Shown piece by piece: positions 12,454-14,775 of a stretch of DNA of 64,000 nucleotides. This DNA is from Paraphysomonas bandaiensis. Lineage: Eukaryota; Protista; Chrysophyceae. A program made the translations under genes and the position numbers. The notes below the pieces were generated by a model. The model ran no database searches, was not told where the DNA came from, and saw only the letters and a program-made list of their open reading frames with translations. Positions within the stretch are counted from its first letter, which is position 1; every line of letters starts with the position of its first letter. The DNA lies in the NCBI GenBank assembly GCA_965644295.1, contig CBFFRP010000338.1, positions 236,181 to 300,180 on the forward strand, in the 5' to 3' direction.

Positions 12454-14223
12454 ATGACTGAAACATTGAACGAAGAGGACTTGTATGATGGATACTCTGC
12501 TGCTGATATATTCGCATCGACTGAAGGACAGGTATGGATATATATATATATATATATATATTAAAGTATGTATATATGTATAAGATATACTGTATATTCA
12601 TATATACGAATATACGTATATGAATACATACATATATAATATTTCATATAAAACTAACCCTCATAAATAAACAGGGCATTACATTCGATGACCTTATCAC
12701 ACTTCCCGGTAGTATAGACTTCGGTATACTTTCATAATATATTCTCACTTCACTTCTTATGTATACATATATATATATATATAGGTGTACATGAAGTTCA
12801 ACTTCATACTCATATTACAAAAAATATTACACTGAAAACTCCTATATGTTCAGCTCCAATGGATACTATAACAGAAGATCGTATGGCTATTAGTATGGCA
12901 TTAAATGGAGGGATTGGATTTATACATTGTTTATGTAGTATTGATCAACAAGTTCATATGATTGATAGAGTGAAACGATATGAGAATGGATTTATATTAG
13001 ATCCTGCTGTATTATCACCTGATCATACCATACAAGATTTAGATGATCTGAAAGACAGGATGGATATTACTGGGGTGCCTATTACAGTCAATGGAAAAAT
13101 AGGATCAGAATTAATTGGATTATGTACTCGACGTGATACTGATTTTATTACGGATAGAACTATTAAGATTAGAGATGTTATGACTCCAGTTAATGAACTT
13201 GTAACTGGTTTATATCCACTCTCTATTACTGCAGCTTTCAATATTCTTAAGGTAATGTATATTTGATAGTACTGATATAGGTTATAACTATTTTATTAGG
13301 AATGTAAGAAGGGGTATTTGCCTATTGTTGATAAGAATATGAATTTAAAAGCGCTTACAACTCGAACAGACCTGAAAAAGAATCGTGATTGTCCTCTAGC
13401 CACACAAGATAGTTCTGGGCGACTGATGGTAGGAGCAGCTGTGAATACTTCGGTTCAGCACCCTCTCGACCAAGAGAGGGCTCGTCGACTTTGTGAAGCA
13501 GGTGTTGACGCCATAGTGCTAGATGCACACAATGGCAGCAATTCCAGACAATTAGAAATGCTTAAATTTATCAAGCAAAACTATCCTCAGGTTGACGTAA
13601 TTGCGGGAAACATAGTGTGTCCTGCCCAGGCGAAAGAGCTATTAGCAGCTGGTGCGGATGGCCTTAGAGTAGGAATGGGGGTTGGCTCTGTGGCAGTAAC
13701 TCATCACCGCCGTGCTGTTGGTAGACCTCAACTTTCTGCCGTATACCATTGCTCAAGAATGGGCCGAGAAGCTGGAGTGCCGGTGATAGCAGACGGTGGC
13801 CTAAAAAATACAGGGACTGTTATAAAAGCACTCGCCCTAGGCGCAAGCTCTGTAATGTTGGGTTCTCTACTTGCTGGAGTGGAGGAGGCCCCGGGAGAAT
13901 ATTTTTTTCAGGACGGAAGGAGGTGGAAGTGGTATAAAAGTGCATCCGCTGAGACCTACAGGATGGCTGAATCTGAAGACAGCACTAGATCTGCTGGTCG
14001 TGTTACGGGTGCAATTGCTGATCGGGGTCCTTTGAGTAGCTATGTTCCGTTTATCTGTCAGTCTATCCGCCATGGGTTGCAAGATATGGGTACCAAGTCT
14101 GTGGAAATAATGCACAACGAATTGTATTCGGGGAAATTGAGGTTTGAGTTGAGATCAGCCAGTGCACAGAAGGAGGGTGGAATTCATGATTTGCACTCGT
14201 ATACGCAGAAGTTATACACCTAG
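12454..14223 (+). CDS. IMP dehydrogenase-like protein with CBS pair; catalytic residues degenerate; 4 exons
   Basis: Exons about 12454-12531, 12675-12723, 12785-13251 and 13300-14223. Motifs [24 protein letters not shown] domains, PVIADGG, C-terminal [14 protein letters not shown]. The catalytic loop reads [10 protein letters not shown] and YRGMGS is absent. Confidence 0.9.
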
Positions 14224-14775
14224 TACCCCATGAGTAGGCCGGCTATACTTTAGTTCGCTAATAGTGAGCTGTACACATGTCATTTAGGGTCAATATTTTG
14301 ATATGATTTTGAACTTATTGTCGATTGTCATAACTAAGAGTAGTTTTTGTTGAGTTCTGCAATATGATGTGATATATATTGTGCAATTGAAGTGAGTTAA
14401 TAGTGTGCGATATGTGAAGCTAACTCATAGGTGTAACGGGTGATTACAGTTACAAAGGAATTAAATTCAGTTACTGATGTGTGACTATATAATATATAGG
14501 AGTGACTGGTGAACATATGATAAGCAGATGTTTCTGAGAGCAGTTGATTCACCAGATGTTACATGAATATGTAGTGCAGTGCCGTATTCAGATTAATAAC
14601 TATAATTTCTTACTTGAAAGTGCATTGTGTTTATTATTAAAGCAAGGTTAAGGTGTACGTGTTGAGTAAAGTTACCTTCAGTGAAATGTCCAATTCTAAC
14701 AGGTTTCAGCATATCATGGCTACTGAATTGAAAATCATATGTCATATATGTCATCTTATTGGGAAATATTATTCA

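Follow-up and report, generated by a model that had tools for sequence, protein, structure and literature searches.

Cysteine-less IMP dehydrogenase paralogues form an old, conserved family of candidate pseudoenzymes in ochrophytes

Flux into guanine nucleotides is governed by IMP dehydrogenase (IMPDH), a classic example of an enzyme controlled through allostery and assembly. The chemistry of IMPDH needs Cys331, which forms the covalent enzyme–xanthosine monophosphate intermediate (E-XMP*), an Arg-Tyr pair in the flap, which activates water, and a closed NAD site; GMP reductase (GMPR) uses the same Cys. Nucleic-acid-binding and translation- or transcription-linked roles have also been described for IMPDH and its Bateman domain. 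Octamer formation by canonical enzymes is driven by the Bateman domains, and in the compressed octamer, where the fingers of opposing tetramers interlock, catalysis is blocked (PMC7018514). Here, we analyze an IMPDH-like gene without this Cys from the chrysophyte Paraphysomonas bandaiensis, which is located on a 64,000-nucleotide stretch of contig CBFFRP010000338.1 (positions 236,181 to 300,180 of the forward strand, assembly GCA_965644295.1; hereafter the window). The gene belongs to a family of Cys-less IMPDH paralogues that is old, is common to several ochrophyte classes and is not a single odd gene. Its product is probably a non-catalytic paralogue, or “pseudo-IMPDH”, which would act as a nucleotide-responsive regulator of guanine-nucleotide synthesis.

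Several described systems offer points of comparison. The PRPS-associated proteins are non-catalytic paralogues whose co-assembly with phosphoribosyl pyrophosphate (PRPP) synthetase has been shown experimentally. Like them, the algal protein would be a dead paralogue of an oligomeric, allosteric enzyme of nucleotide synthesis that is kept by selection, and by analogy they may serve as a model for co-assembly; they differ, however, in fold and pathway step, and co-assembly of the algal protein is hypothetical. A structural parallel is provided by the C318A variant of Trypanosoma brucei GMPR, which, as described in its PDB entries (6jig/6jl8), contains CBS domains, carries Ala in place of the catalytic Cys and still binds GMP. 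Because this variant holds GMP in entry 6jig, a Cys-to-Ala exchange need not, to judge from that entry, abolish nucleotide binding. The variant is an engineered single mutant of an active enzyme, whereas the algal proteins carry many more substitutions, all of them natural. The nearest known analogue is GuaB3 of Actinobacteria, a Cys-less IMPDH homologue that exists beside a true IMPDH, has no known activity, is needed for growth of M. tuberculosis and lacks the CBS domain as well as most of the IMP- and NAD-binding residues (PMC9790621). The algal protein shares with GuaB3 the Cys-less active-site loop and the coexistence with a true IMPDH, but it has retained both its CBS pair and the IMP pocket, and its origin is a eukaryotic-type IMPDH. 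Since it scores 81.4 bits with the GuaB3 model TIGR01304, compared with a cut-off of 342, it is analogous to GuaB3 and not a member of that family. Full-text literature searches returned no description of a Cys-less eukaryotic IMPDH clade, with GuaB3 as the only related case; what is new here is the extension from one gene to an old, conserved pseudo-IMPDH family in ochrophytes.

Compared with eukaryotic IMPDHs (human IMPDH1/2 and Ashbya gossypii), the window protein has the same length and the same overall architecture: the CBS pair is inserted into a TIM barrel, and the finger and the C-terminal SAQxEGGxHxLHS segment are both there. Full-length identity to human IMPDH amounts to 47-49% (E 1e-147). 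The differences are concentrated in the residues that carry out the chemistry, which are numbered here by alignment to human IMPDH1 (numbering equal to IMPDH2). Ala330, encoded by GCA, takes the position of the catalytic Cys331; the NAD-site motif DSSQG is replaced by DAHNG, which follows a D(A/S)xNG pattern, and the residues that stack on the NAD adenosine are lost as well. The flap is degenerate and nine residues shorter than in human IMPDH, with the GMGS turn among the missing residues. It reads YKSASA in place of YRGMGS (Tyr410-Lys-Ser aligning with human Tyr411-Arg-Gly), has no RYF motif, and carries Gly431 at the position of Gln441. Near the site of Arg429-Tyr430, the window protein has Tyr418-Arg419, in reversed order, at a place where the clade conserves nothing. 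Conversely, the IMP ribose-phosphate pocket (Ser329, Asp364, Gly366, Gly387, Ser388, and Tyr411) and the K+ site are all present, as are a 13-residue phosphate-site motif and a 14-residue C-terminal motif. The CBS pair is recognized with 25.6 bits, in two stretches above the cut-off (residues 105-235). The earlier note on this DNA, made from its letters and open reading frames, had listed the Ala codon, the YKSASA and DAHNG replacements, the shortened flap without its Arg-Tyr dyad, and the retained CBS pair, phosphate-site and C-terminal motifs; each of these was recovered in the translation, the alignment or the domain search, and the Ala codon also in transcripts.

An AlphaFold2 model built from a 64-row alignment has a mean predicted local distance difference test (pLDDT) score of 86.4, and its confidence is low solely in the ex-catalytic loop 329-338, the flap 415-429 (pLDDT <50 there) and the C-terminal tail, the segments that are mobile in real IMPDH. 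In Foldseek comparisons, about 490 residues, including the Bateman domain, align to the human, Ashbya, and T. brucei IMPDHs, and the best matches are extended, ATP-bound states of the enzyme, with template modelling (TM) scores of 0.83-0.87. A feature search of the ESM Atlas returned generic IMPDH clusters only. Because the Cys331 nucleophile, the Arg-Tyr flap and Gln441 are gone and the NAD site is altered, we infer that the protein has neither IMPDH nor GMPR activity, and E-XMP* would be neither formed nor hydrolysed.

The same losses recur in a large set of related proteins. Among the 120 best matches to exon 4, residues counted at the catalytic position are Ala (72 proteins), Cys (25), Ser (18) and Gly (1); when the N-terminal half was used as the query in a second search, further Cys-less proteins came to light, including some with Gly and one with Asp. 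Two maximum-likelihood trees, of 66 and 126 rows, place the Cys-less proteins together on one side of a branch that has 100% support in the Shimodaira–Hasegawa-like approximate likelihood ratio test (SH-aLRT), which points to one duplication and one loss of the Cys for the ochrophyte clade. This clade is nested among eukaryotic-type IMPDHs of protists, in a group (95%) to which the canonical exon of the P. bandaiensis genome also belongs. All named members are ochrophytes: Chromulina, Ochromonas, Epipyxis and an Ochromonadaceae sp. (Chrysophyceae), two Mallomonas species (Synurophyceae), Vaucheria and Tribonema (Xanthophyceae), Ectocarpus (Phaeophyceae), as well as Phaeothamnion and Chrysoparadoxa. 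No named model diatom, oomycete or eustigmatophyte is found among the matches; given the word filter of the search and the sparse names, this does not prove that the paralogue is absent from those groups. The window protein is sister to the marine sequences P0121 and P0004 (66-67% identity). Because the same substitutions recur in more than 100 related proteins, the motif losses go far beyond chance.

To compare the two groups position by position, we tabulated 106 Cys-less and 29 canonical proteins. Cys331 is replaced by Ala in 79, Ser in 25 and Gly in 2 of the Cys-less proteins, in addition to the single Asp from the second search. Gln277, present in 29/29 canonical proteins, is Asn in 106/106 Cys-less ones. 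Ser275 and Ser276 are altered, Thr252 is changed to Ala, the stacking positions His253 and Phe282 are variable, Glu335 has become Leu, Val or Ile, and Gln441 is Ser, Gly or Ala (Ser in 83/104). The GMGS/RYF flap has turned into a linker of variable length across the clade. Near-universally kept, on the other hand, are Asp274, Asn303, Arg322, Gly324 to Gly328, Ser329, Thr333, Gln334, Asp364 to Gly366, Met385, Gly387, Ser388 (87/105), Tyr411 and Arg412, along with the K+ loop, the finger hairpin and Glu500-Gly-Gly. The same holds in the Bateman domain for Arg161/Asp162 and Arg224/Asp226/Lys229, the motifs with which the two canonical CBS sites bind ribose. Mean pairwise identity reflects the same division: in the flap it is 0.28 for the Cys-less and 0.70-0.72 for the canonical proteins, compared with 0.65-0.67 and 0.62-0.67 in the barrel and 0.64 and 0.56 in the Bateman domain. 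Within the Cys-less clade, conservation reaches 90% or more in 198 alignment columns, and many Bateman columns are constrained in this clade alone. Judged by these alignments, constraint is released selectively on the parts that serve the chemistry and is kept or tightened on those predicted to bind nucleotides and build oligomers.

This pattern also bears on two readings in which the protein has taken up a different function. One is that it is a neofunctionalised enzyme, whose barrel binds a nucleoside monophosphate and carries out another reaction without Cys nucleophile or flap. The conservation of the replaced residues at positions 277, 441 and 335 would fit this idea, as would the retention of Thr333 and Gln334 and a level of conservation across the whole barrel that equals that of real IMPDH. 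However, the ex-Cys position has switched at least seven times among Ala, Ser, Gly and Asp on the tree, so that the residue there has no fixed chemistry and is not catalytic; the flap that would close the site is unconstrained in both sequence and length, and the NAD adenosine subsite is degraded. Moreover, no chemistry of the IMPDH/GMPR family is known to proceed without the Cys. We regard a new enzymatic activity as quite unlikely. The other reading assigns the protein a stand-alone moonlighting role apart from the control of active IMPDH, for example one based on nucleic-acid binding or linked to translation or transcription. Such a role is favoured by the Bateman domain, which is better conserved among the Cys-less than among the canonical proteins and has additional constrained columns, and by the type-II changes in the Bateman and hinge regions, namely Lys208 to Tyr, Phe139 to Ile and Lys242 to Gly. 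These belong to a set of six columns that are conserved in both groups but differ between them, the others being Tyr32 to Phe, Gln277 to Asn and Gly463 to Ser. Yet the IMP pocket, the K+ loop, the finger and the C-terminal Glu-Gly-Gly are kept. These elements function in the active site and in the octamer, and a role of the Bateman domain alone would not require them. A moonlighting role of this kind therefore appears unlikely.

Family models place the window protein firmly within the IMPDH superfamily. Pfam PF00478 matches exon 3 (4e-24) and exon 4 (1.6e-77), both above the cut-off, and the NCBIfam equivalog model for IMP dehydrogenase, TIGR01302, gives 495.9 bits for P0001, a transcript-derived database protein of 505 amino acids that served as reference for all whole-protein analyses, compared with a cut-off of 481.5. 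GMPR family models reach 115-200 bits, below their cut-offs of 344-675, and the catalytic Cys of these enzymes is missing as well; membership of GuaB1, GuaB3 or GMPR was rejected on the model scores. The TIGR01302 score, together with the high identity to human IMPDH, is what could be cited for a protein that is still an IMP dehydrogenase or a GMPR and works by an unusual mechanism. Against this stand the combined absence of Cys331, Arg429/Tyr430, Gln441, Ser275/Ser276/Gln277 and the base-binding GMGS turn, and the presence of a canonical IMPDH in the same genome, which leave this explanation very improbable. The passed cut-off also means that automatic pipelines name the protein an IMP dehydrogenase despite its missing catalytic residues: database names of clade members are “IMP dehydrogenase”, “CBS domain-containing protein” or “unnamed protein product”. 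This constitutes an annotation trap, since ochrophyte genomes and metabolic models will count two IMPDHs where one is likely active.

The canonical IMPDH that the earlier note had suggested looking for was found on contig C428. A PF00478 search of the whole assembly (62.5 Mb) detected the window gene and this one other IMPDH gene, together with a nitronate monooxygenase on C129 and one sub-threshold match; no third IMPDH-family gene was found in this search. The C428 gene, which we read exon by exon, lies at about 2084-4140 of C428:6500-12500 and contains at least six introns, compared with three in the Cys-less paralogue. Its exons carry every catalytic motif (DSSQG, GSICTTQE, RYRGM, KRYF, VAQGVSG, and REGG). 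After REGG, a short last exon apparently ends in HSFQQL, which makes the C-terminus two residues shorter than usual. The best stand-ins for this canonical enzyme are 66-74% identical to the C428 exons. The N-terminus of the window protein bears no targeting extension, and because neither protein has an N-terminal extension, both are probably cytosolic.

The window gene is a real, spliced, polyadenylated, single-copy gene, with a canonical IMPDH gene in the same genome (Table 1). Transcript contigs of X1 (organism A), X4 (organism B) and X5 (a marine polyA metatranscriptome) contain the exons only, while the DNA run X14 is colinear with the genome and includes the introns. Intron 3 is seen as an explicit GT..AG joint; introns 1 and 2 were deduced from the coordinates of the transcript records, where the aligner split the transcript pieces at the (TA)n tracts. 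P0001, identified by a word search with exon 4, has the same length and exon junctions as the gene model, the sole difference being K147N. The window exons were searched one by one, and their coordinates were strung together solely for codon numbering and the classing of variants. The earlier note's description of a full-length, correctly spliceable gene thus holds, with spliced transcripts from X1, X4 and X5 behind it. RNA editing back to Cys can be ruled out, because the Ala codon reads GCA in every run aligned, with no variant and no sign of editing. The transcript contigs indicate a 3′ untranslated region (UTR) of about 75-105 nt.

Table 1. Position within the window of the Cys-less IMPDH-like gene, its functional sites and neighbouring features.
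Feature	Position	Strand	Evidence
Whole IMPDH-like gene	12454-14223	+	Four exons, 505 codons, all introns GT..AG
Exon 1, ATG, codons 1-26	12454..12531	+	Sequence; matches P0001; transcript coordinates fit splice 12531/12675
Intron 1, GT..AG, with (TA)n tract	12532..12674	+	Missing from contigs X1/X4/X5, present in DNA run X14
Exon 2, codons 27-42 and base 1 of codon 43	12675..12723	+	Sequence, transcript contigs, codon numbering
Intron 2, GT..AG, with (TA)n tract	12724..12784	+	Missing from transcript contigs; record coordinates leave a gap of exactly this size
Exon 3, first part of barrel and most of Bateman domain (CBS pair), AT-rich	12785..13251	+	Pfam IMPDH match; GC3 0.10-0.22
Intron 3, GT..AG, 48 nt	13252..13299	+	Explicit 48-base joint in X1/X4/X5, not in DNA run X14
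Exon 4, end of Bateman domain, main barrel, flap, C-terminus, TAG stop	13300..14223	+	Pfam IMPDH match; translation
3′ UTR to limit of transcript contigs	14224..14330	+	X4 contig ends at 14297, X5 contig at 14330
DAHNG replacing NAD-site DSSQG (Asp274-Gly278)	13522..13536	+	Alignment; translation
Ala330 (GCA) at catalytic Cys331 position	13693..13695	+	Alignment to human IMPDH1
Degenerate, shortened flap, residues 411-432, no GMGS, no Arg-Tyr dyad	13936..14001	+	Alignment
C-terminal Glu-Gly-Gly, K+ site given to neighbouring subunit, retained	14173..14181	+	E, G, G in 104/104 Cys-less proteins
(TA)n microsatellite in intron 1	12538-12562		
(TA)n microsatellite in intron 2	12768-12783		
Calmodulin gene, intronless, 149 aa	11665-12114	-	Four EF hands
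Repeat of ~355 bp, directly after 3′ UTR	14348-14702		DNA-run depth; genome-wide copies

Sequence divergence between close strains shows that the gene is under strong purifying selection at present. Compared with the window, the contigs of organism B differ at seven synonymous sites and one replacement site, and the runs of organism A at three sites, all of them synonymous. Over 347 synonymous and 1168 non-synonymous sites, the total of 10 synonymous changes and 1 replacement corresponds to a ratio of non-synonymous to synonymous divergence (dN/dS) of ~0.04, and the probability of at least 10 synonymous changes among 11 under neutrality is 3.5e-6. The divergence of the UTR in organism B is ~2%, about equal to dS. 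The idea of a decaying pseudogene, or of a transcribed relic free of constraint, was rejected on these data, on the transcripts and on the conservation of the clade. In its favour, the window protein has a long branch and has changed more than most members of the clade; but the reading frame is open, splicing is correct, polyA transcripts occur both in culture and in the sea, and orthologues exist in several algal classes, so that we consider such decay extremely unlikely. Lost essential catalytic residues, purifying selection and expression, which together characterize a pseudoenzyme, thus coincide in this gene. As far as can be read from sequence, the earlier note's proposal of a catalytically dead but selected protein is borne out, with residues lost throughout the clade, and the phylogeny it had called for resolves the Cys-less proteins as a monophyletic group. 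Three findings that it had named as fatal to the proposal were not made: close orthologues do not retain the Cys, dN/dS is not near 1, and the gene is not silent.

If the window protein is indeed a non-catalytic regulator, its retained parts suggest how it may work. The preserved ribose-phosphate pocket argues that a purine mononucleotide is most likely still bound in the barrel, and the preserved CBS motifs argue that ATP or GTP would be bound in the Bateman domain at sites 1 and 2. Furthermore, the finger and Glu-Gly-Gly are invariant in the clade, and none of the six divergent columns is known to be an obvious tetramer contact; for these reasons, tetramers and octamers of the IMPDH type are probably still formed, and the sequence shows no clear insulation from the active paralogue. 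Docking through the conserved interface would, however, be expected of any pair of IMPDH homologues, so that a predicted complex would not tell hetero- from homo-assembly. The protein could then act either as a dead subunit or tetramer that assembles with active IMPDH, or within a separate nucleotide-binding assembly. The conserved Bateman domain, finger and C-terminal element are compatible with the earlier note's suggestion of a nucleotide sensor or co-assembling subunit. Co-assembly with active IMPDH is a tentative proposal, to which we give somewhat less than even weight. In its specific form, in which dead ochrophyte subunits enter mixed tetramers, or a dead tetramer stacks on a live one through the conserved Bateman domains and fingers, and thereby provide an ATP/GTP-gated brake or buffer, the proposal is rather doubtful. 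If it were true, such a brake or buffer would be a regulatory layer of IMPDH undescribed in any organism, acting in major marine primary producers.

Several points weigh against a non-catalytic regulator as the function of the window protein. Its “dead” status is deduced from the amino acid sequence, and the new pattern of Asn277, Ser441 and a hydrophobic residue at 335, itself conserved, might just as well be the sign of a new specificity in catalysis or binding. The window protein is also not a typical representative of the clade, as it departs from the consensus at 14/196 conserved columns, compared with a median of 1.6% for the other members; among these departures are THH where the consensus has TTQ, Lys at position Arg412 and Arg at position Gly442. 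Nor does the window protein keep the residues that correspond to Lys238 and Asn198, two sites in the Bateman domain that are mutated in human IMPDH1 retinal disease and lie near the GTP-specific third site. Finally, no conserved gene neighbourhood was found: P0003, the nearest relative on a long contig, is flanked by kinesin and strictosidine-synthase-like genes and not by calmodulin. A non-catalytic paralogue would represent a natural split of the non-catalytic roles of IMPDH from its chemistry, in a copy that keeps the Bateman domain, the finger and the nucleotide pocket, and it offers a direct test of whether dead subunits tune GTP synthesis in ochrophytes, including brown algae and chrysophytes.

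A second, independent group of Cys-less IMPDHs (P0187, P0196, P0207 and P0194) emerged from the search with the N-terminal half. In the tree, it is sister to a canonical protist group and lies apart from the ochrophyte clade. Its members have the loop GSVSRAQE, DQKQG for DSSQG, Ile in place of Tyr411, and RS or QS in place of RY, and they keep VAQGVSG; P0194 is another oddity, with the loop GSGSISAE. These sequences suggest repeated origins of dead IMPDH paralogues among protists.

The surroundings of the window gene show some further features. The calmodulin gene is arranged head to head with the IMPDH-like gene. No more than 339 bp separate their start codons, so that a common bidirectional promoter region is probable; upstream of 12300, the contig from X1 continues toward calmodulin. 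Base composition changes sharply within the IMPDH-like gene: GC content is ~0.30 up to ~13350 and ~0.50 thereafter, and at third codon positions (GC3) it lies at 0.10-0.22 in codons 51-200, compared with 0.34-0.54 from codon 250 on. At the repeat downstream of the 3′ UTR, the depth of the DNA run rises from ~82 to >13,000. A first look at the genome yielded 579 candidate copies with 87-89% identity, many of which are paired ~3.8 kb apart on one contig. This is the pattern of the long terminal repeats (LTRs) of a short LTR element, and the copy in the window looks like a solo LTR. We take the organism to be a marine, silica-forming ochrophyte: elsewhere in the genome, silicon-transporter-like genes are present on C348, C406, C398, C150, C298, C149 and C405, although their half-repeats score a modest ~50-90 bits with the Pfam SIT model.

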